A DNA stretch of 64,000 nt from Mobula hypostoma (GCF_963921235.1 NC_086102.1:161386001-161450000); one strand, 5' to 3'. Positions 46,601 through 64,000 are shown, numbered from the stretch's first letter. Made by a program: numbers and translations. The notes: generated by a model not told the origin, from the sequence alone.

Positions 46601-49600
46601 CAGATCCCCCCACAGGGCAATGGCAGAACAGCCTGACTTACCCCTCAGAGGCGAGGACAAGAAGAGACAAATACCAAAGAATGACAGACAGTTCCATTTC
46701 TGCATTGGCAATTGAATTTGACAGTGGTGCAGGGGAGGTATCCAGGCAGAGAGTCAGGCAACGGTGGAAAAGAGAGTGAGGGAACAGGACAGTCCAGCAA
46801 GGAATCCCTGGTTTGCAGAGGTATTTATGTCTCAGCCCCAAAACGAGAATCATGTGCCCACAACAGAAACTGGGGAAAACCAGAAACCCCGGAACAAGGA
46901 ATCCTGGACCGGACCATGAACCGGAACACGGATTTCCCGGACCGGACCATGACACTTTCATCAAATTGAGGCAGGTTAGAAATTAGTTAATATTTCAGTT
47001 TGAAACCCTGTTCTGATGGAGAGTTTTGATTCAAAACATAAACAATTTCTTCTCCCCCACTGGTGGCACTAAACCCACTGAATTCCTCTCACAAACAACA
47101 GGAATTCTGCAGATGCTGGAAATTCAAGCAACATACATCAAAGTTGCTGGTGAACGCAGCAGGCCAAGCAGCATCTATAGGAAGAGGCGCAGTCGACGTT
47201 TCAGGCCGAGACCCTTCGTCAGGACTAACTGAAGGAAGAGTGAGTAAGCCCTCTCTTACTCACTCTTCCTTCAGTTAGTCCTGACGAAGGGTCTCGGCCT
47301 GAAACGTCGACTGCGCCTCTTCCTATAGATGCTGCTTGGCCTGCTGAATTCCTCTCACAGATTGCTTGTTGATCCAGCTTCCAACACCTGTAGTCTCCTG
47401 TGTCTCTTAAAATCAGTTGGAGAGAAGGGGGAGAGAGGGTGGACCCAAAGAAATCTCTGTGATAGAGGCCAAGAGATAGCAAAAGGGATGTATGGGTGTA
47501 GGGCCAGCTGATCTTACAAATTACAATTAATTTGTCTAGAGAAGTTGTAAATAGGAAAAGACAAGTCATAGCATAGAGGAGAAAAATACACAATGCTGGA
47601 ATTGTGAGATAGAAAATGGGGAAATGTTTGAAAGGACACCAAAGTTAGTCTTGAGTCAGGATGGAAACAAATTCTTTAAAAATTATTTGTAGAACGGAAT
47701 AGCCTGATGTCCTGATCCTTTAACTTAGACCTAAACTTTAAGGAAGGGAAAAATATAGGATAAAGTTTGTAGTAATATGGCTTGCTGTCAGAAGAAGAGG
47801 ATTACAAAGGTGTGAAGTCTATAAAAAAAAGGACAATTGATTTTATTTCCATTTACAACAAAATGTCTCTAAAATTTTCCATTTAAAATAAATTATGCGA
47901 TATATTATTTCATTTTCACCCTTTAGAACCACCCTCATTTGTGACTAAACCAGATCCTCAAGAAGTTTTACCTGGCTCAACAGTGAAATTTGTAAGTGTT
48001 ATTACTGGCACAGCACCATTGAAAGTAAAATGGTTTAGAGGCAGCACTGAACTGATAACAGGAAGAAGAAGTCGCATATCTTTAAGTGACTCAACATCAG
48101 TACTTGAGCTACTAAATGTGGAACCTTCCCAAAGTGGTGACTACACTTGCCGAGTTAAGAATGAAGCTGGTGAAGATTTTTGTACAACAAAATTAGTTGT
48201 GAAAGGTTTGTAAAATACACATTTTAAAGATGAACATGAGTAATAACATTTTATCAAAGTTACAAGTATATATTTTTACAATTATTTGTCTATGTTTTTT
48301 TTTACCAGAACCAGCAGTATTCCAGAAAAAAATAAAAGATTCCAGTGCAGTACTGGGAAAGTCAGTTTGTCTTGATTGCATATACTCTGGTACTCCAGAA
48401 ATCAAAATAACCTGGAAAAAGAATGGACTTGAGATACTCCAGTCTGAAAAGCACATTATTACAACTACTGAAACATCTTGCATTTTGGAAATTCTCAACT
48501 CTGTTAGAGATGATGGTGCAACATATACTTGTGAAGTACAAAATGATGCTGGAGGGGACACTTGTCAGGCTGAAGTAAAAATACTGGGTTTGTTCACTTT
48601 TAATTTCTTCCATTTAGAAACCATAGAAAAACTACAGCACAGAAACAGGCCTTTTGGCCCTTCTTGGCTGTGCTGAACCATTTTCTGCCTAGTCCCACTG
48701 ACCTGCACAGGGACCATATCCCTCCATACACCTCCCATCCATGTATCTGTCCAATTTATTCTGAAAAGTTAAAAAAGAACCCGCATTTACCACCTCGACT
48801 GGCAGCTCATTCCACAGTCCCTCCACTCTCTGTGTGAAGAAGCCCCCCCTAATGTTTCCTTTAAACTTTTCCCCCCTCACCCTTAACCCATGTCCTCTGG
48901 TTTTTTTCTCCCCTTGCCTCAGTGGAAAAAGCCTGCTTGCATTCACTCTATCTATACCCATCATAATTTTATATACCTCTATCAAATCTCCCCTCGTTCT
49001 TCTACGCTCCAGGGAATAAAGTCCTAACCTATTCAACCTTTCTCTGTAACTGAGTTTCTCAAGTCCCGGCAACATCCTTGTAAACCTTCTCTGCACGCTT
49101 TCAACCTTATTAATATCCTTCCTGTAATTTGGTGACCAAAACTGAACACAATACTCGAGATTCGGCCTCACCAATGCCTTATACAACCTCATCATAACAT
49201 TCCAGCTCTTATACTCAGTACTTTGATTAATAAAGGCCAATGTTCCAAAAGCTCTCTTTACGACCCTATCTACCTGTGACACCACTTTTAGGGAATTTTG
49301 TATCTGTATTCCCAGTTCCCTCTGTTCTACTGCACTCCTCAGTGCCTTACCATTTACCCTGTATGTTCTACCTTGGTTTGTCCTTCCAAAGAGCAATACC
49401 TCACACTTGTCTGTATTAAACTCCATCTGCCATTTTTCAGCCCATTTTTCCAGCTGGTCCAAATCCCTCTGCAAGCTTTGAAAACCTTCCTCACTGTCCA
49501 CTACACCTCCAATCTTTGTATCATCAGCAAATTTGCTGATCCAATTTACCACGTTATCATCCAGATCATTGATATAGATGACAAATAACAATGGACCCAG

Positions 49601-52600
49601 CACTGATCCCTGTGGCACACCACTAGTCACAGGCCTCCACTCTAAGAAGCAATTCTCTACTACCACTCTTTGGCTTCTTCCATTGAGCCAATGTCTAATC
49701 CAATTTACCACCTCTCCATGTATACCTAGCGACTGAATTTCCCTAACTAACCTCCGATGCGGGACTTTGTCAAAGGCCTTACTGAAGTCCATGTAGACAA
49801 CATCCACTGCCTTCCCTTCATCCACTTTCCTGGTAACTTCCTCGAAAAACTCCAATAGATTGGTCAAACATGACCTACCACGCACAAAGCCATGTTGACT
49901 CTCCCTGATAAGTCCCTGTGTATCCAAATGCTTGTAGATTCTGTCTCTTAGTACTCCTTCCAATAACTTGCCCACTACCGACGTCAAACTTACCGGCCTA
50001 TAATTTCCCGGATTACTTTTCAATCCTTTTTTAAACAACGGAACAACATGAGCCAGTCTCCAATCCTCCGGCACCTCACCCGTAGACACCGACATTTTAA
50101 ATATATCTGCCAGGGCCCCTGCAATTTCAACACTAGTCTCCTTCAAGGTCTGAGGGAATACCCTGTCAGGTCCTGGGGATTTATCCACTTTAATTTGCCT
50201 CAAGATAGCAAGCACCTCCTCCTTTTCAATCTGTACAGTTTCCATGATCTCACTACTCGTTTCCCTTAATTCCATAGACTTCATGCCAGTTTCCTTAGTA
50301 AATATAGATGCAAAAAACCCATTTAAGATCTCCCCCATTTCTTTTGGTTCTGCACATAGCCGACCACTCTGATCTTCAAGAGGACCAATTTTATCCCTTA
50401 CAATCCTTTTACTCTTAGTATAGTTGCAAAAGCTCTTTGGATTATCCTTCACTTTGACTGCCAAGGCAACCTCATGTCCTCTTTTAGCCCTCCTGATTTC
50501 CTTCTTAAGTATTTTCTTGCGCTTTTCATACTCCTCAAGCACCTTATTTACTCCCTGTTTCCTATACATGTCATACAACTCTCTGTTCTTCTTCATCAGA
50601 GTTGCAATATCCCTTGAGAACCAAGGTTCCTTATTCCTATTCACTTTGCCTTAAATCCTGACAGGAACATTTGTGGAATTAAAACCAATACCTTTCTTAT
50701 TTGCTTTCTTTTATCAAAACATTTGGTATGCATCTTCTTTAATCATAATAATGTATTGTTTTTATCTTAGAACCGCCAACATTTGTCCAACATTTAGAGC
50801 CTCTGGAAGTAACCGTCGGTGACTCAGGATCTTTTCAATGTGCGCTGACTGGAACACCTGAAATAAAAGTAGCTTGGTACAAGGGAGATACAAAACTGAG
50901 ATCCACCCCAAATTGCAAAATGGAATTTGTGAACAATATTGCAAAATTGGAATTAAAGAAAGTAGCAATGAACGACTGTGGGGAATTCATATGTAAAGCT
51001 GAAAACAAAATAGGTGTCTGTTCATCAAAAGCTGTGCTCACTGTACAAGGTAATTTTGGATGATACATTAATTAGCATTGTGCAGAATGTGAATACCTTT
51101 GTTGGAACATTTTGACCTTTTAACTATTGGTAAAAGAAGCTTGTACAATTATATTAACTTTTCTGTTATGGTTTGTTTTACAGAGCGCAAAACTGCACCT
51201 TCTTTTGTAAGAAAAGTTAAGAATATGGAAGTAACCCTCGGTCTTTCAGTAACATTTGAATGTCATACTGCTGGTTCAGCTCCCATTGAAACTTCTTGGT
51301 TTAAAGATGGTGTAAAGTTGGTCCCTGGAGAAAATTTAAATATGTCTTTCATGGAGAATGTAGCAACTCTTAAAATTCTTAAAGCTGAGATGGAGCATGC
51401 TAGTGAATACACTTGCAAAGCATCAAACATGATGGGAGATGCTTCATGCAGTTCCAGATTATCTGTCAAAGGTATATTGAGTTAAACATTTATGATTTTG
51501 ACTTCTATAATATTTACCATAAACTATATAGAACATAGAATAGTACAGCACAGTACAGGTCCTTCGGCCCACAATGTTGTGCCGACTCTCAAACCCTGCC
51601 TCCCATATAAGCCCCCACCTTAAATTCCTGCATATACCTGTCTAGTAGTCTCCTAAACTTCACTAGTATATCTGCCTCCACCACCGACTCAGGCAGTGCA
51701 TTCCACGCACCAACCACTCCTTGAGTAAAAACCTTTCCTCTAATATCCCCCTTGAACTTTCTACCCCTTACCTTAAAGCCATGTCCTCTTGTATTGAGCA
51801 GTGGTGCCCTGGGGAAGAGGCGCTGGCTATCCACTCTATCTATTCCTCTTATTATCTTGTACATCTCTATCATGTCTCCTCTCATCCTCCTTCTCTCCAA
51901 AGAGTAAAGCCCTAGCTCCCTTAATCTCTGATCATAATGCATACTCTCCAAACCAGGCAACATCCTGGTAAATCTCCTCTGTACCCTTTCCAATGCTTCC
52001 ACATCCTTCCTATAGTGAGGCAACCAGAACTGGACACAGTACTCCAAGTGTGGCCGAACCAGAGTTTTATAGAGCTGCATCATTACATCGCAACGCTTAA
52101 ACTCTATCCCGCGACTTATGAAAGCTAACACCCCATAAGCTTTCTTAACTACCCTATTCACCTGTGAGGCAACTTTCAGGGATATGTAGACAAGTACCCC
52201 CAGCTCCCTCTGCTCCTCCACACTACCAAGTATCCTGCCATTTACTTTGTACTCTGCCTTGGAGTTTGTCCTTCCAAAGTGTACCACCTCACACTTCTCC
52301 GGGTTGAACTCCATCTGCCACTTCTCAGCCCACTTCTGCATCCTATCAATGTCTCTCTGCAATCTTTGACAATCCTCTACACTATCTACAACACCACCAA
52401 CCTTTGTGTTGTCTGCAAACTTGCCAGCCTACCCTTCTACCCCAACATCCAGGTCGTTAATAAAAATCATGAAAAGTAGAAGTCCCAGAACAGATCCTTG
52501 TGGGATACCACTAGTCACAATCCTCCAACGTGAATGTACTCCCTCCACCATGACCCTCTGCCTTCTGCAGTCAAGCCAATTCTGAATCCACCTGGCCAAA

Positions 52601-55600
52601 CTTCCCTAGATTCCATGCCTTCTGACTTTCTGAATAAACCTATGTGGAACCTTGTCAAATGCCTTACTAAAATCCATGTAGATCACATCCACTGCACTAC
52701 CCTCATCAATATGCCTGGTCACCTCCTCAAAGAACGCTATCAGGCTTGTTAGACACAATCTGTCTTTCACAAAGCCATGCTGACTGTCTCTGATCAGACC
52801 ATGATTCTCTAGATGCCCAGAGATCCTATCTCTAAGAATCTTTTCCAACAGCTTTCTCACCACATATATAAGGCTCACTGGTCTATAATTACCCGGACTA
52901 TCCCTACTACCTTTTCTGAACAAGGGGACAACATTCGCCTCCCTCCAATCCTCCAGTACCATTCCTGTGGACAACGAGGACATAAAGATCCCAGCCAGAA
53001 GCTCAGCAATCTCTTCCCTCACCTCGTGGAGCAGCCTGGGGAATATTCCATCAGGCCCTGGGGACTTATCCATCCTAATGTATTTTAACAACTCCAACAC
53101 CTCCTCTCCCTTAATATCAACATGCTCCAGAACATCAATCTCACTCATATTGTCCTCACCATCATCAAGTTCCCTCTCATTGGTGAATACCAAAGAGAAG
53201 TATTCATTGAGGACCTCGCTCACTTCCACAGCCTCCAGGCACATCTACCCACCTTTTTCTCTAATTGGTCTTACCTTCACTCCTGTCATCCTTTTTTTCT
53301 TCACATAATTGAAGAATGCCTTGGGGTTTTCCTTTACCCTACTGGCCAAGGCCTTCTCATGCCCCCTTCTTGCTCTTCTCAGCTCCTTCTTAAGCTCCTT
53401 TCTTGCTTTCCTATATTCCTCAATAGACCCATCTGACCCTTGCTTCCTAAACTTCATGTATGCTGCCTTCTTCCTCCTGACGAGATTTTCCACCTCACTT
53501 GTCACTCATGGTTCCTTCACCCTACCATTCTTTATCTTCCTCACCGGGACAAATTCATCCCTAACATCCTGCAAGAGATCTCTAAACATCGACCACATGT
53601 CCATAGTACAATTCCCTGCAAAAACATCATCCCAATTCATACCCGCAAGTTTTAGCCTTATAGCCTCATAATTTGCCCTTCCCCAATTAAAAATTTTCCT
53701 GTTCTGTCTGATTCTATCCTTTTCCATGATAATGCTAAAGGCCAGGGAGCAGTGGTCGCTGTCCCCCAGATGCTCACCCACTGAGAGATCTGTGACCTGA
53801 CCCAGTTCATTACCTAGTACTAGATCTAGTATGGCATTCCCCCAGTCGGCCTGTCCACATACTGTGACAGGAATCCGTCCTGGACACACTTAACAAACTC
53901 TGCCCCATCTAAACCCTTGGAACTAATCAGGTGCCAATCAATATTAGGAAAGTTAAAGTCACCCATGATAACAACCCTGTTATTTTTGCACCTTTCCAAA
54001 ACCTGCCTCCCAATCTGCTCCTCTGTATCTCTGCTGCTAGCAGGGGGCCTATAGAATACTCCCAATAGAGTAACTGCTCCCTTCCTGTTCCTGACTTCCA
54101 CCCGTACTGACTCAAAAGAGGATTCTGCTACATTACCCACCCTTTCTGTAGCTGTAATAGTATCCCTGACCAATAATGCCACCCCTCCTCCCCTTTTTCC
54201 GCCCTCTCTATCCCTTTTAAAGCACTGAAATCCAGGAATATTGAGAATCCATTCCTGCCCTGGTGCCAGCCAAGTCTCTGTAATGGCCACTACATCATAA
54301 TTCCATGTACGTATCCAAGCTCTCAGTTCATCACCTTTGTTCCTGATGCTTCTTGCATTGAGGTACACACATTTCAGCCCTTCTACCTTGCTGTCTTTAC
54401 ACCGTATATTCTGCTTCTCTTTCCTCAAAGCCTCTCCATATGTTTGATCTGGCTTTATTCCATGCACCTCTTTCACTGCTCTATCGCTCTGGGTCCCATC
54501 CCCCTTGCAAATTAGTTTAATATAGTGTTGACATTTTAATATCTGCTTTCATGTTGCCTTGCATAGTTATTACTTTGTTACTTTTACAATAAAATATTTA
54601 TGTTTACATTTTTAGAGCCTAGGGTTGCACCCCGCTTTGACAAAAGACTAGAACCAGTAGAAGTTACAACAGGGGAAAGTGTGGATCTTGAATGCCATTT
54701 AACTGGATCTTTCCCAATTAAAGTTACTTGGCTGAAGGATGGCAAAGAGATTCGATCTGGTGGCAATTACAACATAACTTATGTAGAAAATACACCCCAC
54801 CTGATCATTCTGAAAGCAGACAAAGGAGATGTTGGTCAATACATTTGTGAGGCCAGCAATGATATTGGAAAGGATTCATGCAAAACTGAAGTGACTGTGA
54901 AAGGTACTGATCAATAATAATTACAAATCTTTGCTCTCTGTTATATCTTGTGAGCCTAGATGTTAGTAATTATAGAAGAAATCTTTTAAATATTTAAAAA
55001 TGAATGTGAGTTGTAAGAATCCAGGTTTGATTAGTTTCAAAAGATACTTCTTTAACATCTGCAGTGTGATTCTTAATGGTTACTTGGTCAATTTTTTTTT
55101 GCTATCCTGTGCATGTGCATTTCTTATTTTGATTTTCCTAACCATCTTTGGGTTGGAGCTTTTCTTGCTATAATAGTTGGCATTGCTTTTGTAGCTAATA
55201 GGTTTATTCAATATCCAGATATAGGTTAACTATTAATAAAATTGAATTAGGAAAAAAAATGAAAAGATCCAAACAAGGTAACAAAAATGCATAAACACCA
55301 ATAAATAAAAATATCAAAATAATACAAAAACAAAACTAAAGAGTAATACATTCCTCCCCAAGTTCTGCTCTACAATCCCTATGAAAATCAACAAGCTGCC
55401 AGAATTTCCACCAAATATGACTTTGTACATGATCCAGGAGGCAACTTCCTCAGCTTAAAGGTGACCAGAATCCTGTGGTGTAGTGACTAGAAGCCTTAGC
55501 TAAAGTTAGCATGCTTCACGACAACTGGTTGTTTATCACTTTCATAGTGCTACTTCTGTCGGTTACAGATCGTAAAATTCCACCAAGCTTTACTAAAAAG

Positions 55601-58600
55601 CCTCTTGAAACAATACACGAAGTAGAAAGAAAACCTATAAAACTTGAAGCTCGTGTTTCTGGTTCACAACCATTATCTGTAACCTGGTTCAAAAATGAGC
55701 AAGAGATATTGCAAACTGAAAACTATGAGCTATCATTTAAACACAACGTCGTAATGTTGAACATTAAAAAAGCACAGCATGCTGATTCTGGTGTGTATAC
55801 ATGTGAAGCATCCAATGAAGTAGGCACTGCACAGTTTAACGTCTCTGTTTCAATCGAAGGTTAGTAATGCTATTAGTGATTACAATGGGTATTATTTTAT
55901 TATTCTGTTACTTGCTGTCAAATGAGTTAACCAATGACTTAACATAGAGAATGTTCTGTGTACAATCAGTCCTCATTATTAATATATTCACTTTCACTTA
56001 CTTGTGAAGTTGTCCCCAGTCCCTATCTTGAACTTCTTTGGACAAGTATTTCTATAACCATATACATGCTGAGGTACTAATCATTATCTCTATAAACATA
56101 GTGATCAGTTTTCATACTGCTTGGGTCAAGTGGTTCCCTGCTGTTTGCTGTTGCAGTCAAGAATAGCCTCAGGCTTACATAGCTGTTCCCTATGATTTCA
56201 GAACTGATCTCTGCATTCAAGTATAAATGCATTCATTTAAACTAATACTGTTACCTTATAGGTATTTTTTAAAAACTGTAATACTTAAGGGACTATTTTA
56301 TGATTATTTGGACGGTCATAGGGTACAAAAGACAGTGTCTAAGTGGTGTTCATTTTATCTGGTGTATGCGGGAAGCCCCTGTCTCTTGTGGATAATGAAG
56401 AAGGAGTTGGTGTAGAAATTTTTACTATTTATTTTTCATAATATGGCATTACTTGTATCTTCTTCACTTATTGCGAAGGTGGTGTTGAGCCACCTTCTTG
56501 ATCAGCTAATGTTCTCCTAGGGAAGATGTACACACACGTTTTCAATGGGAAGTCAAGAAAATAGATCTTGTGACAATCAATGAGCAGCAATATATTTACA
56601 AACCAGAGTATTAAGTAGATGAGCTTGCAAGTGGTTGTGTTCCAAATGTCCACAACACGCTGGAGAAACTCAGCAGGTCGGGCAGCATCCGTGGAAACGA
56701 TCAGTCAACCTTTCGGGCCGGAACCCTTCGTGACAAAAGGTTCTGGCCCGAAACGTTGACTGATCGTTTCCACGGTTGCTGCCCGATCTGCTGAGTTCCT
56801 CCAGCGTGTTGTCAGTGTTGCTTTGACCCCAGCATCTGTAGATTATTTTGTGTTTGTGTTCCAAAAGTGCTTTCTTAGTGATAGAAGTAAGAGATGCTGT
56901 CAGAGAGACAAGTAAATGAAGTACATTGTGCAGCCATGGCACACAGAAAATTGAGGAATGGATGTTTAAAGTGGTTTACAGTTGCAAATATGGTGCCAGT
57001 TAAATTAGTTGCTTTGTCAGGCTTCTCAAGTATTGTTTCATGCTGAGAGTGTTGGTATGTAGAGTAATCTTGGTTTCTTTGCGGATGAATCACTGAAATT
57101 TAATATGTACATGGGGAAGCAAGTAGGAAGTCTGAATTGTCTTCTCAATCTGTAATGGTTTATTTTGCAGAACATAAAATGGCACCTTATTTCATCAGGA
57201 AAATTAAGAATATGGAAGTATCTCTTGGTTTACCAGTGACCTTTGAATGTTGCACTGCTGGTTCTGCTCCTATTAAAATATCTTGGTTTAAAGATGGTGT
57301 AAAATTACTCCCTGGAGAAAACTTAATTATATCTTTCATGGAGAATGTAGCAACTCTTAAAATTCTTAAAACTAAGATGAATCATGCTGGTGAATACACT
57401 TGCAAAGCTTCCAACGAAGTTGGAGTTGTTTCATGTAGTTCAAAACTAGTTCTTATAGGTATGTTGGATTGAATATTTACCTTATTTTTTCTTTAATAAT
57501 GTTTTGATCTATAATTGATATATGTTGTTACTTTACAATTGATAGTTCTATAATAGAGTTGTTGTAATTATTGTATTAATTATTATAATGTTTTCAGAGT
57601 CCAGAGTTGCTCCTCTATTTGACAAAAAACTGGAGTCAGTGGAGGTAACAACCGGACAAACTGTGGACTTTGAGTGTCACTTAATTGGCTCTCCACCAAT
57701 TAAAGTTACTTGGCTGAAGGATAGCAAAGAGATTCGATCGGGTGGAAATTACAAGATAACTTATGTGGAAAGTACACCCCGTCTGATTATTCTGAAAGCA
57801 GACAAAGGAGATATTGGTCAATACATTTGTGAGGCCAGCAATGATATTGGAAAGGATTCATGCAAAACTGAAGTTATTGTGAAAGGTATTGATTAATAGC
57901 AGTTATAATCTTAACTCTCTCATGCATCTAATGAGCCTAGACTTCAACAATTTCAAAACTGAATGTTTATTTTTGCACTTCAAAATGATTCTGACAAGTC
58001 ATTTGATCATTTCTGTTATATTTTTATCTGTGTTTCTCATTATTATAATATTTTAAAATGGCTTAACACTGATCATTAGTTCTCTATTTTTGTGCACATC
58101 AATCTCTCCTTTTCCTGAAGCATATATTTAACTTTGAAGACCCAAAGAATGTGAACACCATTTAACAAGAATAAGGCTGAACTTTTACAACAACTCCATT
58201 TTCCTGTATTTTCCCTTGTTTACTATGATCTGTAAACAATACTCTGTAATTCTTAGTCTTGAATATATTTAGATCAGTTAGTGTCTACATTTCATTCATG
58301 GAAAAATAATATTATTGAAGAAATTAAAAATAGCTATGTGTCTGATCAAACAATCTGGTTTCCTACTTAAATTGCTGTTGCTTTTATCTTGTCCAATGGA
58401 AAGGCTCCGTCCTAATAACTTTCCACATCCCTGGAGTTCAGCAACATTTCTATCAGGTCATGCAAAATAGAGGCCCTTTCCTGGAAACTTTCCGATGATT
58501 GGCAAAGTTGGGGACAGGGCTTTGCTAACTGTAGTAGTCGCCAATAGTTTTATTAGTTTTTAATTGCATAATATTCAAAGGTAGTTTAAAAACTATAAAA

Positions 58601-61600
58601 ATTAAGGCAAATAATAAATTAAATAGAACTACTTGAAAAAAAATGTTGCTTAAAGCACGTAACAATTAAAAGCAAGTCAAAGCAAACAAAATTAACTATG
58701 TAAAACTATTGCTCTGCAATTCCCATTAAAGTAAGCGTGGCCACAAATCTTTCAGAAATTTTGTCAAACGTACCACTGCCTCTGTGTACTACAATGAACT
58801 AACAGTAAGTCCATGTGAGTACGGCAAAAATTACCAATTAATCAAGTTGAAACCATCATTAAAAGTCAGCCTGCCTCAAGCCAATTGAAAGTATGTGATA
58901 TTTATATTGTTACTCCTTTCTAATGCAGATCATAAAATTCCACCAAACTTTACTAAAAAACCTCTTGAAACAATTCATGAAACAGAAGGAAAATCTATAA
59001 AACTTGAAGCTCATGTTTCTGGTTCACAACCATTATCCGTAACCTGGTTCAAAGATGAGCAAGAGATCTTGCAAACTGAAAACTATGAGCTATCATTTAA
59101 AAACAATGTCATAATGTTGAACATTAAAAAAGTACAGCTTGCTGATTCTGGTGTGTATACATGTGAAGCATCCAATGAAGTAGGCACTGCAAGGCTTAAT
59201 GTATCTCTGCTGATCAAAGGTAAGTGAAGGGTAATGATGATTGTATGGAGTGCAAATTCTCCTCTTTCTTCAGTCGCATTTATTGGTAATTTTTTAGAAG
59301 TGTTATTAGAACTATATTTGTTTAAAGTACAAATACCAAAAGGAAATTAAAGATAGTATCAAATAAAATGAAGAACCTAATAAAGTTGTCAGAGATTGCA
59401 GTACATTATAAGATGGCAAGCATTTAGAACTCAGTGCAAGTAAGCCAAGAAATTGATAAAGGCAAGATGGAATATTAGAGTAGACTATTAAGAAACATAA
59501 AAATTGAGTAATTCATTATTGTAATCTTCAATAGGCATTTTAAAATCCTTATTGTTATAAACTCTTCTTGTCAGCATATCATTTTGATGGTATCTTTTTT
59601 CATGATTATACATTAGTTAAAATCCAACAATTATTTCCCATCTCTAATAGCCCTTTATATGGTGGTAGTAAGCCACCTTCTTGAACATGCCATGGATTCC
59701 CAGGAAAGCAGCTCACAATGCCATTGAGAAGGGAATTCCATGATTTAGACCCATTTGTGATGACAATGATATCTTTCCAAGTCAGAGTATTGTGTGATTT
59801 AGAGAGGAACCTGTAGATGCCATGTGCTTTCTTGGCATTGAGTTCGTAGCTTTTACAGGTCCTATCAAAGTTGCCTGGGCAATTGATTTCAGTGTACTTT
59901 GTAAATGGCATATACTGTAGCCATGGTGCGCAGGTACTGATTGCAGGAAATGTTTTGAGTGGCTTAGAGTGGTTGCCTTGTGTATGAACGACTAAAAGTT
60001 AACTTGTCAGTATGGCATGCAAGTAGGGTATCAAATGATCTTATTTTCATAACATTTTATTTTACAGAACATAAAATTCCACCTTCTTTCTTAAGAACAA
60101 TGGAGAATATTGAAATGACTGTTGGCTTACCAATCACATTTGCATGTCATACTGCTGGTTCAGCTCCTATTGTAACTGCTTGGTTTAAAGATGGTGTAAA
60201 ATTAATTCCTGGAGAAAATTTAATTATATCATTTATAGAGAATGTAGCATCTCTTAAAATTCTTAAAACTGAATTGAAGCATGCTGGTGAATACACTTGC
60301 AAAGCTTCCAACATAGCGGGAGATATTTCATGTCATTCAACACTGTCTCTCAAAGGTACAGTATATTGAGTTATATTTACTAATTCAGCTTCTTTCCTTA
60401 ATTAATAATTACCTTTTATAGTATTAGGACTTTAGTATCTACTTTCATCAATCAGTACTAAACGTTATTACTTTGCTGTTGATGCATTTATAATAGAGTG
60501 CAATTCTTGTTATGGTTTCAGAGTCTAGAGTTGCTCCTCTATTTGACAAAAAACTAGAACCAGTGGAAGTTACTGTTGGAAAAACTGTGGATCTCGAGTG
60601 CCACTTAATTGGGTCTTCCCCAATTAAAGTTAGATGGCTGAAGGATGACAGAGAGATTCATTCGGGTGGCAATTATAAGATAACTTTTGTGGAAAATACA
60701 CTGCATCTGATTATTCTGAAAGCAGACAAAGGAGATGTTGGTCAATACATTTGTGAGGCCAGCAATGATATTGGAAAGGATTCATGCAAAGCTGAAGTGA
60801 TTGTGAAAGGTTATTGTTCAATAACAATTATAATTCTTTATTCGTTGACGTATGATATGTGTCTGGGCTTTATTTATTATGGGGAAAATGTTCACACCTT
60901 TTAACAATGATTTTTATTTGTTGTGCTACCATTCAACAAGAATAAGGCTGAACTTTCATATCAGCTGCAATTCCCTCCACTTTCCCATTTCTCTTCTTCC
61001 CAATTGTGCTCAAAATCCTGTAGATCTTAATACAGAATATATTTAGTGTCTTGAGCAATTGCTTTTTGCTCAGTGGAGATTAATATCACTGAAGATATAT
61101 AAAAAAATTTATGGACCATATCATACTTGAATCACTGCCAGTAGTCTGTCTGACCACCTTATTGGCACTCATTGCTGAGGCTCTAACTTATTAATCTTCC
61201 ACATTCTGGAATGCAGCAATATTTTATCAGGTGTTGCAGAAAAGATACCCTGCCCTCAAAACTTCCTGGTAGTTAGCAAAACTGGAGATGAAGCTCTTGA
61301 AATTATTTCTTCATGTAAATAATTAAATGTGCAACAAAATTATTTTTGAATCAAGACAAATAGAATGAACTAAAATACACAAAAATAGTTTAAAATAATT
61401 AAAAACCGCAAAGCAAACACAAAATTAAGAAGTAAGACATTTCCATTGGCCTTCTAAAATGTACACAGATCAAACCCTTTGATGTCAATGGGGTCTCAGA
61501 TTTTACTCCAGGCTTGATCCTAGTGTATAATCCAAGGAGCAATTTGCTCAGTTTAATGTTCTGGTCTGCTGCAGAATTCCAGTTGAATTGAAATTTTAAA

Positions 61601-64000
61601 TGACAAATGATAGCAGTTCTAATTGGAACTGTTGATAATAGTCAGCATGTTTTAGGCCAGGTAGATGTGTGTGTGTTTTTCACAATGCTATTCCTTTCTG
61701 ATACAGATCGTAAAATTCCACCAAGTTTTACCAAAAAGCCTCTTGAAACAATTCATGATACAGAAGGAAAATCTGTGAAACTTGAAGCTCGCGTTTCTGG
61801 TTCACAACCATTATCTGTCACCTGGTTAAAAGATGAGCAAGAGATCTTGCAAACGACAAACTATGAGTTCTTATTTAAAAATAATCTCATAACAATGGAC
61901 ATTAAGAAAGCACAGCTTGCTGATTCTGGTGTTTATACATGTGAAGTATCCAATGAGGCAGGCTCTGCAACATTTAATGTGTCTCTGCTAATCAAAGGTT
62001 AGTGATGGATATTCATGGCTATAAGGGTTGGCGAAACTTACACTTGCCGATGTATATTTAGAAACGTAGAAAATGTACAGCACATTACAGGTCCTTTGGT
62101 CCACAATGTTGTGCCGATCATGTAACCGACTCTAGAAACTGCCTAGAATTTCCCTACTGCATAGCCCTTTATTTTTCTAAGCTCTATGTACCTATCTAAG
62201 AGTCTCTTAAAAGACCCTATTGTATCCACCTCCACCACTGTTGCTGGCAGTGCAATCCATGCACCCACCACTCTCTATGTGGAAAAACTTACCTCTGACA
62301 TCCCCCTTATACCTACTTAAAAGCACCGTAAAACTATGTTCCCTCTTGTTCGCCATTTCAGCCCTGGGAAAAAGCCTCTGGCTATCCACACAAGCAATGC
62401 CGCTCATCAACTTATATACCTCTGTCAGGCCACCTCTCATAATCTGTCGCTCCAAGGAGGAAAGGCCAAGTTCACCCAACCTATTCTCTTAAGGCATGCT
62501 CTCCAATCCAGGCAAAATCCTTGTAAATCTCCTCTGCACGCTCTCATTTTGTCATTTTTTAATATTTATTATTACAAAGTCCATTGGACTTCTAAAATCT
62601 GTTGTTGATTTCTCTTATATACATTTTGTTTAAAATACTGCATTTTAATCAATAACTATAAATACAAAGGTGTTCTCATTATTCATTTTTCACAATTTGG
62701 GCATTGCTGGAAAGGTCAACATTTATCGCTTCCCTCTAATAATTACTTGGGATGTGGTGGTGAGTCAAGTTCTTGAGCCATCACAGTCCTTCTGGAAAAG
62801 CTAGTCCTATTGTGCCTTTGGGAGGAGATTCCAGGTTTTAGGCCAAGTCACACTGAAGGAACATCAATTTATTTCAAAATCAGTATGTTCTGTGATCCGG
62901 ACAGAATCCTGGAGGTAATGGTATTCTCATAAATCTCTCTGGTTGTAGAAAAGCTGCTGTCAGAATTGGCTGGGCAAATAACTAGTGCATTTGTTGATGG
63001 CACACACCATACATATGTTGCATATAGTGAGTGGAATGGATATTTACAGTAATTTAGGATGGTAGATGTGGTGCCTATCAAGTCAAGTGCTTTGCTACAG
63101 TGGTGTCAAACGTATAGAGCATTGTTTCAATGTCAGAGATTGAAAAGTGTTGGTGTTCAGAGGGACCTGGATATTTCTGTACACAAATAGCTGTTAACTT
63201 GTTGAGCAGGTAAGTAGGAGTTTAGAATTCCTTTATCTGTTTCTTCAGTTTTATAAGCTTATATTGCAGCCGTGATCATCAAGAATAAAGTATACTATCT
63301 TGCCCTTGTATTAGTACATGAGTCCCTTGTTACTTCTGGAATCACTATGTTTCTGCAAATTGAGTTTCTTTCCTTGATTTTCTGTCTTTATCAAAGCTTG
63401 CCTGTTTTGTTAATTAGAATCCAATTCAAGCGGTAGGAATCCATATCCTAATTGAGTTACAATAGCAATCATTCTGTGTTATTTTGTTGTTGGGCAAGTT
63501 TTATCATCCAGGATAGGTCATTAGATGAAACTTTATCTATGAAAAAGTGCTAAAAGTGTCGGAGCTAAAATGCGGATATTATTGTGTTATTAATGTTTTG
63601 AGCAAGTCTGTATCTAAACATTCTTAAGTGAAAGAGGAAATGTGTTAATTGGAAACAACAAGGACATGAACACAAAGGGGAGAGAATATGTAAAATGATA
63701 ATAGAAATTTTCTGTATTAAATATTAACATTTATTTTGTTGTTTTTTTAGAACTTAAGAAGCCACCTGTCTATGATATTCCACTCAAACCAATGACAGCA
63801 ACTGAAGGAGAGTCTGTGCAGCTAAGTTGTCATGTCCATGGGTCTGAACCAATTAAAGTACAGTGGTTCAAAGATAGGAAAGAAATAAAACCATCTGACA
63901 AATTGAACATGACTTTCGTAAATGGCACAGCTACCCTAGCAATTAAAACAGCTGCAAAGACAGATAGTGGTGACTACTTGTGTAAAGCCACAAATGAGGC
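1..64000 (+). CDS. TTN: Titin (connectin) gene, partial: I-band from the N2B exon to the Ig domain preceding N2A; spliced, 68 intact coding exons in window
   Basis: Serial I-set Ig exons (PPxF...C...W.K...D.G.Y.C...N..G), all phase 1 and 279-291 nt (one 564 nt). Domain order and sequence match recalled human titin I25-I79, e.g. VRFQWF..CGEYTC of I27 and [21 protein letters not shown] of I79. Confidence 0.98.
2448..2726 (+). CDS. TTN: TTN exon, Ig I27-like
   Basis: AG/GTAAGT, 279 nt, open, [11 protein letters not shown]. Confidence 0.95.
2863..3950 (+). mobile_element. Degraded CR1-clade LINE 3' portion (RT C-terminus), approximate bounds
   Basis: aaatttgctgaaggcacaaaaatagatggc = [10 protein letters not shown]-like remnant; similar to the intact copy at 48.6-50.7 kb. 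Confidence 0.75.
3093..3268 (-). mobile_element. Penelope-like terminal-repeat fragment nested in the CR1
   Basis: Flanked by 11-bp TSD AGGGATTGCAA (3082-3092, 3269-3279); contains a degenerate hammerhead (minus strand CTGAAGA...GAAACATC). Confidence 0.75.
4360..4923 (+). CDS. TTN: TTN exon, two Ig (I28-I29-like)
   Basis: AG/GTAAGA, 564 nt, open, [11 protein letters not shown]...DKPYFTRTL. Confidence 0.95.
5215..5398 (-). mobile_element. Degraded V-SINE/HE1-like tRNA-derived SINE
   Basis: ggaggaaactggaacacctggagcaaacccac...atgcaaactc is the reverse complement of the V-domain core. Confidence 0.6.
6098..6520 (-). mobile_element. Degraded CR1-like LINE 3' fragment, approximate
   Basis: Resembles other CR1 3' ends in the window (gagaatataagaaatag..., ctctgggtgaaaaaat). 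Confidence 0.45.
6588..7262. repeat. Unclassified GC-richer interspersed-repeat-like segment, approximate
   Basis: Compositional shift within an AT-rich intron; family not assignable by eye. Confidence 0.3.
7889..8170 (+). CDS. TTN: TTN Ig exon, 6-Ig super-repeat SR1-a
   Basis: 282 nt, open, [11 protein letters not shown]. Confidence 0.93.
8295..8573 (+). CDS. TTN: TTN Ig exon SR1-b
   Basis: 279 nt, open, [11 protein letters not shown]. Confidence 0.93.
8676..8954 (+). CDS. TTN: TTN Ig exon SR1-c
   Basis: 279 nt, open, [11 protein letters not shown]. Confidence 0.93.
9046..9324 (+). CDS. TTN: TTN Ig exon SR1-d
   Basis: 279 nt, open, [11 protein letters not shown]. Confidence 0.93.
9422..9709 (+). 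CDS. TTN: TTN Ig exon SR1-e
   Basis: 288 nt, open, [11 protein letters not shown]. Confidence 0.93.
10375..10653 (+). CDS. TTN: TTN Ig exon SR1-f
   Basis: 279 nt, open, [11 protein letters not shown]. Confidence 0.93.
10835..11116 (+). CDS. TTN: TTN Ig exon SR2-a
   Basis: 282 nt, open, [11 protein letters not shown]. Confidence 0.93.
11238..11516 (+). CDS. TTN: TTN Ig exon SR2-b
   Basis: 279 nt, open, [11 protein letters not shown]. Confidence 0.93.
11637..11915 (+). CDS. TTN: TTN Ig exon SR2-c
   Basis: 279 nt, open, [11 protein letters not shown]. Confidence 0.93.
13333..13611 (+). CDS. TTN: TTN Ig exon SR2-d
   Basis: 279 nt, open, [11 protein letters not shown]. Confidence 0.93.
13714..14001 (+). 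CDS. TTN: TTN Ig exon SR2-e
   Basis: 288 nt, open, [11 protein letters not shown]. Confidence 0.93.
14162..14391 (+). mobile_element. tRNA-derived SINE with CORE-like domain
   Basis: A box TGGCCAAGTGG, B box GTTCGAGCC, then gtgtccttgagcaaggcacttaacc; 10-bp TSD CTCTTATTTT (14152-14161, 14392-14401). Confidence 0.8.
14481..14759 (+). CDS. TTN: TTN Ig exon SR2-f
   Basis: 279 nt, open, [11 protein letters not shown]. Confidence 0.93.
15225..15479 (+). mobile_element. V-SINE (HE1-like) with (AAAT)n tail
   Basis: Head ggggcggcacggtagcatagtggttagc, V-domain-like gagtttgtatgttctcc, tail aataaataaataaat. Confidence 0.8.
16119..16636 (-). mobile_element. Tc1/mariner non-autonomous deletion derivative
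   Basis: TIRs ccactttattaggtgccacctg / caggtgtacctgataaagtgg; minus strand encodes [27 protein letters not shown] (Tc1 transposase N-terminal HTH remnant). Confidence 0.8.
16741..17022 (+). CDS. TTN: TTN Ig exon SR3-a
   Basis: 282 nt, open, [11 protein letters not shown]. Confidence 0.93.
17043..18865 (-). mobile_element. Degraded CR1-clade LINE fragment interrupted by a Harbinger element, approximate
   Basis: 17043-17168 and 17918-18865 align by eye with the CR1 copies at 48.6 and 51.5 kb (ggaataaagtcctagcct, gaccttgtcaaagg). Confidence 0.75.
17172..17914 (+). mobile_element. PIF/Harbinger non-autonomous element
   Basis: TIRs aggctgatttatacttgtgcgt / acgcacaagtataaattggcct; TTA TSD (17169-71, 17915-17); internal [15 protein letters not shown]...[23 protein letters not shown]...[12 protein letters not shown] (Harbinger transposase N-terminus). 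Confidence 0.88.
18959..19237 (+). CDS. TTN: TTN Ig exon SR3-b
   Basis: 279 nt, open, [11 protein letters not shown]. Confidence 0.93.
19384..19662 (+). CDS. TTN: TTN Ig exon SR3-c
   Basis: 279 nt, open, [11 protein letters not shown]. Confidence 0.93.
19770..20048 (+). CDS. TTN: TTN Ig exon SR3-d
   Basis: 279 nt, open, [11 protein letters not shown]. Confidence 0.93.
20524..20811 (+). CDS. TTN: TTN Ig exon SR3-e
   Basis: 288 nt, open, [11 protein letters not shown]. Confidence 0.93.
21249..21328. mobile_element. 80-bp hAT (Charlie-like) MITE
   Basis: TIRs caggggttcccaac / gttgggtatccctg; imperfect 8-bp TSD ttccagac / ttctagat. Confidence 0.7.
21586..21864 (+). CDS. TTN: TTN Ig exon SR3-f
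   Basis: 279 nt, open, [11 protein letters not shown]. Confidence 0.93.
22067..22348 (+). CDS. TTN: TTN Ig exon SR4-a (absent from ORF track)
   Basis: 282 nt, hand-translated open frame [38 protein letters not shown]...[17 protein letters not shown]...VK. Confidence 0.93.
22438..22716 (+). CDS. TTN: TTN Ig exon SR4-b
   Basis: 279 nt, open, [11 protein letters not shown]. Confidence 0.93.
22878..23156 (+). CDS. TTN: TTN Ig exon SR4-c
   Basis: 279 nt, open, [11 protein letters not shown]. Confidence 0.93.
23277..23555 (+). CDS. TTN: TTN Ig exon SR4-d (core Trp replaced by Cys)
   Basis: 279 nt, open, [11 protein letters not shown]...LTVKCFKDG. Confidence 0.92.
24085..24910 (+). mobile_element. 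Degraded CR1-clade LINE fragments, approximate
   Basis: gatgttgtctgcatggatttcagaaaggtgtttgac = YMDFSKAFD-like remnant; 3' end ggatatggacattgtgtagg. Confidence 0.75.
25195..25359. mobile_element. Penelope-like fold-back insertion (imperfect ~62-bp inverted repeat)
   Basis: ccaaagcgacacacacaaaatgctgg...aagag / ctctt...ccagcattttgtgtctgttgctttgg; same family as the 3.1, 40.2, 47.1 and 56.7 kb copies. Confidence 0.75.
25771..26058 (+). CDS. TTN: TTN Ig exon SR4-e
   Basis: 288 nt, open, [11 protein letters not shown]. Confidence 0.93.
26304..26582 (+). CDS. TTN: TTN Ig exon SR4-f
   Basis: 279 nt, open, [11 protein letters not shown]. Confidence 0.93.
26834..27115 (+). CDS. TTN: TTN Ig exon SR5-a
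   Basis: 282 nt, open, [11 protein letters not shown]. Confidence 0.93.
27460..28700 (-). mobile_element. Degraded CR1-clade LINE fragments, approximate
   Basis: Minus-strand ORFs 27534-27797 and 27801-28034 resemble CR1 ORF2 C-terminus ([15 protein letters not shown]). Confidence 0.8.
28888..29166 (+). CDS. TTN: TTN Ig exon SR5-b
   Basis: 279 nt, open, [11 protein letters not shown]. Confidence 0.93.
29312..29590 (+). CDS. TTN: TTN Ig exon SR5-c
   Basis: 279 nt, open, [11 protein letters not shown]. Confidence 0.93.
29728..30020 (-). mobile_element. CR1-clade LINE 3' end, approximate
   Basis: aagaccataggatataggagc... and gaattccacagattcacca match CR1 3' ends elsewhere in the window. Confidence 0.65.
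30416..30694 (+). CDS. TTN: TTN Ig exon SR5-d
   Basis: 279 nt, open, [11 protein letters not shown]. Confidence 0.93.
30818..31105 (+). CDS. TTN: TTN Ig exon SR5-e
   Basis: 288 nt, open, [11 protein letters not shown]. Confidence 0.93.
31262..31610. mobile_element. hAT-type MITE with ~115-bp TIRs enclosing a Tc1-derived fragment
   Basis: CAG...CTG termini; perfect 8-bp TSD GATAAATT (31254-61, 31611-18); long TIRs; core resembles 16360-16445. Confidence 0.82.
31701..31979 (+). CDS. TTN: TTN Ig exon SR5-f
   Basis: 279 nt, open, [11 protein letters not shown]. Confidence 0.93.
32503..32784 (+). CDS. TTN: TTN Ig exon SR6-a
   Basis: 282 nt, open, [11 protein letters not shown]. Confidence 0.93.
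32905..33183 (+). CDS. TTN: TTN Ig exon SR6-b
   Basis: 279 nt, open, [11 protein letters not shown]. Confidence 0.93.
33375..33653 (+). CDS. TTN: TTN Ig exon SR6-c (absent from ORF track)
   Basis: 279 nt, hand-translated open frame [28 protein letters not shown]...FATLLVA. Confidence 0.93.
33789..34067 (+). CDS. TTN: TTN Ig exon SR6-d (core Trp replaced by Cys)
   Basis: 279 nt, open, [11 protein letters not shown]...LTVKCFKDG. Confidence 0.92.
34397..34684 (+). CDS. TTN: TTN Ig exon SR6-e
   Basis: 288 nt, open, [11 protein letters not shown]. Confidence 0.93.
34920..35198 (+). CDS. TTN: TTN Ig exon SR6-f
   Basis: 279 nt, open, [11 protein letters not shown]. Confidence 0.93.
35428..35709 (+). 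CDS. TTN: TTN Ig exon SR7-a
   Basis: 282 nt, open, [11 protein letters not shown]. Confidence 0.93.
36492..36770 (+). CDS. TTN: TTN Ig exon SR7-b
   Basis: 279 nt, open, [11 protein letters not shown]. Confidence 0.93.
36901..37179 (+). CDS. TTN: TTN Ig exon SR7-c
   Basis: 279 nt, open, [11 protein letters not shown]. Confidence 0.93.
37360..37870 (-). mobile_element. Degraded CR1-clade LINE fragment, approximate
   Basis: Minus-strand ORF 37591-37836 [17 protein letters not shown] matches CR1 ORF2. Confidence 0.8.
38282..38560 (+). CDS. TTN: TTN Ig exon SR7-d
   Basis: 279 nt, open, [11 protein letters not shown]. Confidence 0.93.
38685..38972 (+). CDS. TTN: TTN Ig exon SR7-e
   Basis: 288 nt, open, [11 protein letters not shown]. 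Confidence 0.93.
39225..39503 (+). CDS. TTN: TTN Ig exon SR7-f
   Basis: 279 nt, open, [11 protein letters not shown]. Confidence 0.93.
39586..40312 (+). mobile_element. Penelope-like element 3' fragment (GIY-YIG endonuclease remnant + terminal repeat with decayed hammerhead)
   Basis: 39694-39792 [33 protein letters not shown]; 40214-40249 agtcCTGAAGA...aaaacatcaact; 13-bp TSD TTTAGAAACATTA (39573-85, 40313-25). Confidence 0.85.
40764..41045 (+). CDS. TTN: TTN Ig exon SR8-a
   Basis: 282 nt, open, [11 protein letters not shown]. Confidence 0.93.
41162..41440 (+). CDS. TTN: TTN Ig exon SR8-b
   Basis: 279 nt, open, [11 protein letters not shown]. Confidence 0.93.
41666..41944 (+). CDS. TTN: TTN Ig exon SR8-c
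   Basis: 279 nt, open, [11 protein letters not shown]. Confidence 0.93.
42091..42369 (+). CDS. TTN: TTN Ig exon SR8-d
   Basis: 279 nt, open, [11 protein letters not shown]. Confidence 0.93.
42486..42773 (+). CDS. TTN: TTN Ig exon SR8-e
   Basis: 288 nt, open, [11 protein letters not shown]. Confidence 0.93.
42962..43240 (+). CDS. TTN: TTN Ig exon SR8-f
   Basis: 279 nt, open, [11 protein letters not shown]...[17 protein letters not shown] (resembles last human 6-Ig f domain). Confidence 0.93.
43684..43965 (+). CDS. TTN: TTN Ig exon, 10-Ig super-repeat a
   Basis: 282 nt, open, [11 protein letters not shown]. Confidence 0.93.
44058..44336 (+). CDS. TTN: TTN Ig exon, 10-Ig b
   Basis: 279 nt, open, [11 protein letters not shown]. 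Confidence 0.93.
44443..44721 (+). CDS. TTN: TTN Ig exon, 10-Ig c
   Basis: 279 nt, open, [11 protein letters not shown]. Confidence 0.93.
44839..45117 (+). CDS. TTN: TTN Ig exon, 10-Ig d
   Basis: 279 nt, open, [11 protein letters not shown]. Confidence 0.93.
45205..45492 (+). CDS. TTN: TTN Ig exon, 10-Ig e
   Basis: 288 nt, open, [11 protein letters not shown]. Confidence 0.93.
45770..46954. mobile_element. Solo LTR of an LTR retrotransposon/ERV (1185 bp)
   Basis: TGTCA...TGACA termini; 5-bp TSD CTTTC (45765-69, 46955-59); no internal coding sequence. Confidence 0.85.
46350..46665. repeat. ~60-bp minisatellite, about 5 copies, inside the solo LTR
   Basis: Recurrent cagggcaa(c/t)(a/g)gcagaa..gcctgacttaccc...gaggcaagga unit. 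Confidence 0.8.
47191..47226 (-). ncRNA. Identical minimal hammerhead ribozyme on the minus strand
   Basis: Exact reverse complement of 47277-47312. Confidence 0.72.
47277..47312 (+). ncRNA. Minimal type I hammerhead ribozyme (Penelope-associated), sense to titin pre-mRNA
   Basis: AGTC-CTGACGA-AGG(GTCTCGG)CCT-GAAA-CGTC-GACT: stem I AGTC/GACT, intact core, palindromic ACGT stem III; predicted cleavage after C47308. Confidence 0.75.
47927..48205 (+). CDS. TTN: TTN Ig exon, 10-Ig f
   Basis: 279 nt, open, [11 protein letters not shown]. Confidence 0.93.
48309..48587 (+). CDS. TTN: TTN Ig exon, 10-Ig g
   Basis: 279 nt, open, [11 protein letters not shown]. Confidence 0.93.
48617..50670 (-). mobile_element. 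5'-truncated young CR1-clade LINE
   Basis: Contains the uninterrupted ORF2 segment; 3' tail read as ...tttctatggtttcta. Confidence 0.92.
48689..50644 (-). CDS. CR1 ORF2 reverse transcriptase (651 aa, lacking N-terminal endonuclease)
   Basis: [49 protein letters not shown] motifs with no stop or frameshift. Confidence 0.9.
   Translation of the reverse strand: MNRNKEPWFSRDIATLMKKNRELYDMYRKQGVNKVLEEYEKRKKILKKEIRRAKRGHEVALAVKVKDNPKSFCNYTKSKRIVRDKIGPLEDQSGRLCAEPKEMGEILNGFFASIFTKETGMKSMELRETSSEIMETVQIEKEEVLAILRQIKVDKSPGPDRVFPQTLKETSVEIAGALADIFKMSVSTGEVPEDWRLAHVVPLFKKGLKSNPGNYRPVSLTSVVGKLLEGVLRDRIYKHLDTQGLIRESQHGFVRGRSCLTNLLEFFEEVTRKVDEGKAVDVVYMDFSKAFDKVPHRRLVREIQSLGIHGEVVNWIRHWLNGRSQRVVVENCFLEWRPVTSGVPQGSVLGPLLFVIYINDLDDNVVNWISKFADDTKIGGVVDSEEGFQSLQRDLDQLEKWAEKWQMEFNTDKCEVLLFGRTNQGRTYRVNGKALRSAVEQRELGIQIQNSLKVVSQVDRVVKRAFGTLAFINQSTEYKSWNVMMRLYKALVRPNLEYCVQFWSPNYRKDINKVESVQRRFTRMLPGLEKLSYRERLNRLGLYSLERRRTRGDLIEVYKIMMGIDRVNASRLFPLRQGEKKTRGHGLRVRGEKFKGNIRGGFFTQRVEGLWNELPVEVVNAGSFLTFQNKLDRYMDGRCMEGYGPCAGQWD
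50771..51049 (+). CDS. TTN: TTN Ig exon, 10-Ig h (absent from ORF track)
   Basis: 279 nt, hand-translated [44 protein letters not shown]...LTVQ. Confidence 0.93.
51184..51471 (+). CDS. TTN: TTN Ig exon, 10-Ig i (triplet 1, i)
   Basis: 288 nt, open, [11 protein letters not shown]. Confidence 0.93.
51530..54519 (-). mobile_element. ~3-kb CR1-clade LINE, ORF2 frameshifted, endonuclease domain present
   Basis: 53826-54476 [32 protein letters not shown] (APE endonuclease); RT pieces at 52606-53244 and 51589-52362; (TTCTATG)n-like tail at 51530. Confidence 0.92.
54616..54903 (+). CDS. TTN: TTN Ig exon, 10-Ig j (triplet 1, j)
   Basis: 288 nt, open, [11 protein letters not shown]. Confidence 0.93.
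55569..55859 (+). CDS. TTN: TTN Ig exon, I78-like k (triplet 1, k)
   Basis: 291 nt, open, [16 protein letters not shown]. Confidence 0.93.
56647..56853. mobile_element. Penelope-like fold-back insertion (~76-bp imperfect inverted repeat)
   Basis: acaacacgctggag...gaaccctt / aaggttctggccc...ctccagcgtgttgt; 12-bp TSD TTGTGTTCCAAA (56635-46, 56854-65). Confidence 0.82.
57171..57458 (+). CDS. TTN: TTN Ig exon, triplet 2, i
   Basis: 288 nt, open, [11 protein letters not shown]. Confidence 0.93.
57598..57885 (+). CDS. TTN: TTN Ig exon, triplet 2, j
   Basis: 288 nt, open, [11 protein letters not shown]. Confidence 0.93.
58929..59219 (+). CDS. TTN: TTN Ig exon, triplet 2, k
   Basis: 291 nt, open, [11 protein letters not shown]. 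Confidence 0.93.
60068..60355 (+). CDS. TTN: TTN Ig exon, triplet 3, i
   Basis: 288 nt, open, [11 protein letters not shown]. Confidence 0.93.
60522..60809 (+). CDS. TTN: TTN Ig exon, triplet 3, j
   Basis: 288 nt, open, [11 protein letters not shown]. Confidence 0.93.
61707..61997 (+). CDS. TTN: TTN Ig exon, triplet 3, k
   Basis: 291 nt, open, [11 protein letters not shown]. Confidence 0.93.
62060..62545 (-). mobile_element. CR1-clade LINE 3' end
   Basis: Minus-strand ORF 62207-62479 [30 protein letters not shown]; similar to 51530-52000. Confidence 0.85.
63751..64000 (+). CDS. TTN: TTN Ig exon, I79-like (truncated by window end; absent from ORF track)
   Basis: [42 protein letters not shown]...[12 protein letters not shown], open to window end. 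Confidence 0.92.

Follow-up and report, generated by a model that had tools for sequence, protein, structure and literature searches.

The stretch of Mobula hypostoma DNA analysed here (64,000 nucleotides, hereafter referred to as the window) raises the question of whether a block of three immunoglobulin (Ig) exons, present three times in tandem shortly before the N2A region of titin, is a genuine copying unit of the titin spring, and if so, how old it is and whether all of its copies are kept in use. The length of the titin spring sets the passive stiffness of muscle, and the 6-Ig and 10-Ig super-repeats within it are reportedly the subject of earlier work by Kenny, Witt and Bang. The middle tandem-Ig segment has been described as three N-terminal Ig domains, a variable number (n) of 6-Ig super-repeats, 10-Ig super-repeats (members A-J) plus a C-terminal pair of Ig domains (78 and 79), with published counts of 3x6 + 3x10 for human, 3x6 + 1x10 for zebrafish, 6x6 + 1x10 for elephant shark and 8x6 + 1x10 for whale shark (PMC12241362). 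The layouts of these four species lack a 3-Ig period and have one 78-type domain (PMC12241362), which agrees with the first-pass annotation, where a single I78-type domain in human and known super-repeats of six and ten Ig domains were assumed. We conclude that the locus very probably holds a genuine, old and lineage-restricted tandem triplication of the I-J-78 exon block in the middle tandem-Ig spring of titin, with the term lineage-restricted being based on the domain counts of one paper (PMC12241362).

Exon and domain structure of the array

A splice-aware exon scan (AG acceptor, open phase-1 frame with Ig core motifs, and a G/GT donor) identified 66 complete Ig exons with AG/GT borders on the + strand of the window, which contains no runs of N; each codes for a single I-set Ig domain in ~279–291 nt and is in phase 1-1. 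The domain order is three Ig domains, eight 6-Ig super-repeats, one 10-Ig super-repeat (A-J), an I78-type domain, I-J-78, a second I-J-78 and an I79-type domain, which can be written as 8x6 + 1x10 + 78 + (I-J-78)x2 + 79. Up to the I78-type domain, and again in the closing I79 type, this order is in agreement with the published layout (PMC12241362). Based on the pattern of best matches, exons 2–49 (7889–43240) form the eight 6-Ig super-repeats with types A-F, and exons 50–59 (43684–54903) form the single 10-Ig unit, consisting of A-F followed by G, H and two exons designated i1 and j1. An open frame of 247 aa is located 5′ of the 6-Ig array (4326–5066) and apparently encodes two Ig domains in one exon, which together with the exon at 2448–2726 would account for the middle segment's three N-terminal Ig domains. 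Within the 6-Ig array, comparison of exons 20–31 with exons 32–43 (22067–40000) showed that partners 12 positions apart are 71–92% identical at the amino acid level, far above other same-type pairs, which confirms a 12-Ig duplication of younger age.

A repeat search of positions 50000–64000 gave three families of 300-nt direct repeats, each with three copies at 77–86% identity, starting at 51162/57149/60046, 54595/57577/60501 and 55502/58862/61640. The array (i-j-k)x3 consists of nine Ig exons of 288, 288 and 291 nt, all in phase 1-1, between positions 51184 and 61997. These are the I-type exons i1 (51184–51471), i2 (57171–57458) and i3 (60068–60355), the J-type exons j1 (54616–54903), j2 (57598–57885) and j3 (60522–60809), and the I78-type exons k1 (55569–55859), k2 (58929–59219) and k3 (61707–61997), all on the + strand. 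On the same strand, the H-type exon lies directly before the triplicated block (50771–51049), and the G-type exon of the single 10-Ig super-repeat is found at 48309–48587. A block of three Ig exons of these lengths, present three times in tandem at high identity and with every exon intact, was what the first-pass annotation had described, and the borders that it gave were recovered exactly; all nine exons have an open frame (0 stop codons), a preceding AG and a GT donor directly 3′, with 13–15 pyrimidines per 20 nucleotides in the tract before the acceptors. Between copies, the exons share 80–90% of nucleotides and 67–84% of amino acids. In the manner of a super-repeat, each of the nine exons (e58–e66) best matches its two same-type copies, at 67–84% amino acid identity, and matches any other domain at no more than 44%. 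Since the unit contains three different types, neighbouring domains within the array share only ~37–42% identity, with same-type domains two positions apart, and such dissimilarity of neighbouring domains has been argued to avoid co-aggregation (PMC12241362).

Exons i2, j2 and k2 match the Pfam I-set domain with E-values of 1e-20 to 1e-25, and the closest match among solved structures is titin I65-I70 (3b43). Domain types were assigned with titin fragments from other vertebrates, represented by 150 sequences from an exhaustive search (ranked by summed Ig matches) that were re-screened locally. Fragments with the domain orders H-I-J-78 (P0147), H-I-J-A-B-C (P0093) and 78-79 (P0041) gave the best hits for H, i, j, k and the next exon, and the H-i-j order agrees with P0147, P0093 and P0123. 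In a maximum-likelihood tree, k grouped with I78-type domains (support 99/98) in a clade that includes domain 4 of P0147, residues 1488–1582 of P0041, P0003 and P0004, while the clades of j with J-type domains, of H with other H domains and of the last exon with I79-type domains had support of 91/82, 100/99 and 99/96, respectively. The predicted assignment of j to the J type and of k to the I78 type is supported. The i exons form a well-supported clade of their own, which the tree does not clearly join to the I-type domains of other vertebrates, their best hits at 46–53% identity; they were assigned to the I type of the 10-Ig unit by best hit and position only. With this qualification for i, the best matches, the domain order and the tree bear out the initial proposal that i and j are the last two members of the 10-Ig repeat, and that k is an I78-like domain.

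The exon downstream of the array (63748–63998, + strand, start only as the window ends here) has the acceptor tttttag/AA, is 51% identical to the domain following 78 in P0041 and is of the I79 type; N2A itself lies beyond the window. The array had been placed directly 5′ of the N2A-proximal domain, which holds in so far as an I79-type exon follows, with the refinement that I79 sits one domain before N2A proper. The resulting architecture is H-(I-J-78)x3-79 in place of the usual H-I-J-78-79. Adjacency of 78 and 79 was found in P0041 and in L004. The latter is a 7726-nt Logan contig of SRR26131391 containing titin sequence of another vertebrate, and displays a different filling of the same titin segment, with D-E-F-G-H, approximately eight divergent Ig exons (most of which are G-like), a single I78-type exon and an I79/J-like exon, and with introns that are all very short.

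Orthologous copies, selection and introns

In the comparison with other species, the species of the window is labelled A, and B, C and R are other species. Sampled 31-mers were found at 96–97% in independent contigs of species A, at 60–62% in species B and at 5–19% in several others. DNA contigs of species C cover 30 of 30 bins of 56030–62029 at ~94–97%, with one piece that leaves the end of k2, spans the complete intron and enters i3, and another in which the intron 3′ of k1 is joined to a k-type exon. Word-indexed protein searches with k2, i2 and j2 of a collection without species A returned only ORFs of species R and distant I78-type ORFs. The species R contigs, all from one Logan-assembled run, contain G-H-i-j (L003), j-k (L001) and j-k (L002), and in BLASTN searches, by copy-specific collinearity of introns, L003 matched copy 1 only, L001 matched copy 2 only (58287–58621 and 59220–59507), and L002 matched copy 3 only (61065–61706 and 62564–62777). 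The R orthologues are located at L003:176–454 for the G-type exon, L003:573–851 for the H-type exon, L003:978–1265 for i1 and L003:1425–1712 for j1, at L001:198–485 for j2 (by the copy-specific intron matches) and at L002:379–666 for j3. The K2P distances of introns were 0.26–0.37 between A-R orthologues, versus 0.42–0.94 for paralogous flanks, and the alignable length of the j-k intron was 53–74% between orthologues versus ~12% between paralogues. In the protein-level tree, k2 pairs with R_k2 (93/82) and k3 with R_k3 (95/85). The copy-specific intron matches of L003, L001 and L002 to copies 1, 2 and 3 therefore place three copies before the split of A and R, so that the triplication is older than the separation of A from this deeply diverged species. 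Orthology was not recovered from trees of the j exons, which is attributed to concerted evolution, because the 3′ ends of j are near-identical, some states are shared within a species and the dS between k1 and k2 is low; the intron matches were used instead. The first-pass annotation had proposed a lineage-specific 3-Ig periodicity, straddling the boundary of the 10-Ig repeat and adding six Ig domains. The straddling and the six added domains stand, but the array is not private to this genome, as at least three further species carry it too, including a deeply diverged one.

The dN/dS values of the orthologous A-R exon pairs were 0.35 for i1, 0.22 for j1, 0.30 for j2, 0.28 for j3, 0.28 for k2 and 0.26 for k3, at dS values of ~0.29–0.46, with no stops or lost splice sites in these six pairs. 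Paralogous dN/dS between copies ranged from 0.15 to 0.66, and on the orthologous and paralogous values together all copies have therefore been retained as coding sequence under purifying selection. The last 96 nt of j (54808–54903, 57790–57885 and 60714–60809) are 97–98% identical among the A copies, synonymous sites included, 91–95% identical among the R copies and 90–95% identical between A and R, and some states are common to all three paralogues in one species and different between species. Furthermore, the dS between k1 and k2 is 0.20, half of the orthologous dS (0.42–0.46). This points to gene conversion or strong nucleotide-level constraint (e.g. a splicing enhancer) that acts on parts of the exons only and keeps these alike.

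Intron sequence is partly co-duplicated, comprising the i-j intron, 100 nt 5′ of i2 and i3, an intronic island and a weak homology downstream of k. Within the window, the 22-mer aacaagaataaggctgaacttt occurs at two positions only, 58164 and 60935 (chance expectation of 0.06 matches for a degenerate 21-mer), and the claim of co-duplicated intron sequence at these two sites was thereby upheld. The j2-k2 intron (58164–58184, + strand) and the j3-k3 intron (60935–60955, + strand) share the 21-nt island AAYAAGAANAAGGCTGAAMTT without a single difference, and the orthologous introns of R carry it with three changes each (at L001:833 and L002:993). The island is purine-rich, and the intron around it is otherwise unalignable. 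It was not found in the j1-k1 intron, and a search of the window for a base-pairing partner gave no reverse-complement copy with ≤3 mismatches. The same old repeat had been proposed to follow each k exon; a faint homology of 59–64% is indeed present 3′ of every k exon (56419–57163, 59593–59973 and 62673–63254), but the clear repeat (51525–51990 and 62055–62545, 69% identity) is a LINE fragment located after i1 and after k3.

The i-j intron is 3144 nt long in copy 1, versus 139 nt in copy 2 and 166 nt in copy 3. In copy 1 it contains a decayed LINE in antisense orientation (51589–54476, - strand), broken into five ORF pieces and absent from the orthologous 159-nt intron of R. A further antisense LINE in the G-H intron (48689–50644, - strand) retains an unbroken ORF of 651 aa that includes a reverse-transcriptase domain, and is absent from the orthologous 118-nt intron of R. 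Both LINEs were shown by this comparison to be later insertions. An inverted-repeat element of 161 nt (56652–56812, 91% self-complementary) stands out by very high contig depth in each of the four runs mapped, and is related to sequences at 47146–47354 and 25192–25358.

Unequal crossing-over between introns, which would have taken place in two steps before the A-R split, may have produced the array. The breakpoints would lie in the H-i and k-79 introns, and the exon distances, in which i2 is close to i3, j2 to j3 and k1 to k2, would fit another crossover within the j-k intron once two copies were present. This two-step history is weakly supported, with exon distances being blurred by gene conversion. 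It would involve a recombinant middle copy, with i and j like copy 3 and k like copy 1; this fits the exon dS, is without clear support from flanking-intron distances, and is retained as a possibility only. The finding that k1 and k2 are closer to each other than orthologues are points to later gene conversion, which would account for the exon distances as well. In the protein, the triplication would add six folded Ig domains, arranged in series immediately N-terminal of I79/N2A, and from what is generally known of titin these are expected to lengthen the low-force extensible segment of skeletal (N2A-type) titin.

Splicing and alternative readings

Expression was assessed with de Bruijn contigs, based on 31-mers, from small runs whose RNA origin is a guess (two from species A and one from species B). 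Since the same runs also contain intronic contigs, pre-mRNA or DNA must be present as well. Contigs were mapped to 56030–62029, and as copy 1 lies outside this region, contigs of copy 1 were placed on copy 2. A GT..AG joint from j to k2 with exact exon borders was present in 3 of 3 RNA-like runs, with one X11 contig matching k2 exactly and a second, k1-like contig placed at the same position. The j3-k3 joint was found in X11, in a 1219-nt contig that comprises the end of j3 (the shorter side of the joint being 47 letters), k3 and a further 879 nt beyond k3. In X14, a GT..AG joint connects k1 to i2, with 26 letters of the distinctive 3′ end of k1 followed by the start of i2. Exact RNA-like contigs cover i2 (57169–57253, X11), i3 (60066–60333, X11), j3, k2 and k3, and no joints into j2 or i3 from the preceding exon were among the RNA-like contigs listed. 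Contigs of two species, from guessed-RNA runs, indicate that the exons are probably spliced at their exact borders.

The copies have almost the same j donors and k acceptors and all exons are in phase 1-1, so that any j donor could be joined to a k acceptor further downstream. The array may on that basis be a splice-tunable cassette, yielding one, two or three I-J-78 units with the domain order kept, and with the intronic island and the nucleotide-frozen 3′ third of j as control elements. This reading, which is compatible with the triplication and adds a regulatory layer to it, is possible but rather unlikely. Joints of the GT..AG type that lead from the end of j, positioned at 57883, into k3 at its acceptor (61705) were found in X9 (species A) and X14 (species B), as was a joint from j to j3 in X14, and these would hint at skipping of at least three exons. 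They are ambiguous, as the j side is only 21–27 letters long and just two positions within it distinguish j1, j2 and j3, which leaves the donor copy uncertain; in addition, copy-1 contigs were placed on copy 2, 31-mer contigs can be chimeric across the 31 or more nucleotides common to the j exons, and the canonical j3-k3 junction is present as well. The exact conservation of the island between paralogues, with three changes in each R intron amid unalignable sequence, agrees with a role in control, as does the near-identity of the j 3′ third among copies and its similarity to R, but the island could be any intronic element. A more specific form of the cassette, which we consider speculative and unlikely, is that the pairing of j donors with k acceptors further along sets a countable one to three units between the tandem-Ig spring and the N2A hub, under control of the island, which copies 2 and 3 alone carry in their j-k introns, together with the j 3′ third, which gene conversion would keep identical so that splice signals stay interchangeable.

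Three other readings deny that the array is a retained and restricted novelty. Middle-Ig exons of mammalian titin are skipped in many isoforms, and the i-j intron of copy 1 has accepted a 2.9-kb LINE without apparent harm, which would suit extra copies that are neutral passengers, tolerated or mostly skipped. However, this is very unlikely given dN/dS values of 0.22–0.35 in 6 of 6 A-R exon pairs at dS ~0.3–0.46, the intact frames and splice sites, and the occurrence of copy 2 and copy 3 exons in spliced RNA-like contigs. An assembly artefact, in which one I-J-78 unit was wrongly multiplied or haplotypes were set one after the other, has nothing in its favour other than the general risk in repeated regions, and its probability is negligible with exons that differ by 10–20%, introns that are largely unalignable and copy-specific orthologues in three other species; the first-pass annotation had already called it unlikely on the divergence of the copies. 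Finally, the array could be a known feature that is ancestral or widespread among vertebrates, as the triplication predates a deep split between species, and as the whale-shark count was derived from an old, fragmented scaffold (PMC12241362) and could have missed copies. The chance of this is slim, since one 78-type domain is present in the published layouts of human, zebrafish, elephant shark and whale shark (PMC12241362) and the fragments of other vertebrates read H-I-J-78, H-I-J-A-B-C or a single 78 followed by 79. A full-text literature search also found no description of a 3-Ig titin repeat, and the one paper on cartilaginous-fish titin that it returned describes 6-Ig and 10-Ig repeats only (PMC12241362), in line with the expectation of the first-pass annotation that the array had not been described. 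The reading of an old, lineage-restricted triplication of the I-J-78 block is therefore preferred.

Significance and relation to known titin repeats

Evolution of spring length in titin has so far been documented as copying of 6-Ig and 10-Ig blocks, and the array adds a third period of three Ig domains, which crosses the canonical boundary and multiplies the I78 type, single elsewhere, beside the N2A signalling region. The published layout of cartilaginous-fish titin is hence not general for the group. The array is a real but modest variant of the known lengthening of the titin spring by exon-block copying, and its value may lie in being an old natural case maintained by selection, with which to ask what fixes the size of a duplication unit (for instance the avoidance of similar neighbours), whether gene conversion preserves interchangeable splice signals, and whether block copies serve as length modules selectable by splicing.

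The closest known systems are the 6-Ig and 10-Ig super-repeats (Hanashima et al. 2025, PMC12241362), which share with the array the presence of one Ig domain per symmetric exon, tandem multi-exon blocks, dissimilar neighbours, the same gene segment and a copy number that differs among lineages. The array differs from these in its period of three and in its unit, which falls outside the A-J nesting by combining the last two members of the 10-Ig repeat with the normally unique I78-type domain, and a 3-Ig array was reported in none of the four species of that study (PMC12241362). The triplication of nine exons in the PEVK region of human titin (cited in PMC12241362) is likewise a tandem triplication of an exon block in the titin spring with LINEs nearby, but that event is ~1–3 million years old and involves PEVK exons (PMC12241362), whereas the array described here consists of Ig exons and predates a split with an intron K2P of ~0.3, and its LINEs are later insertions that species R lacks. 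The 12-Ig higher-order duplication in the same window shares the gene and the presumed mechanism of unequal crossing-over between exon blocks, but is much younger (71–92% amino acid identity, versus 67–84% in the array), and copies whole 6-Ig units without creating a new period.
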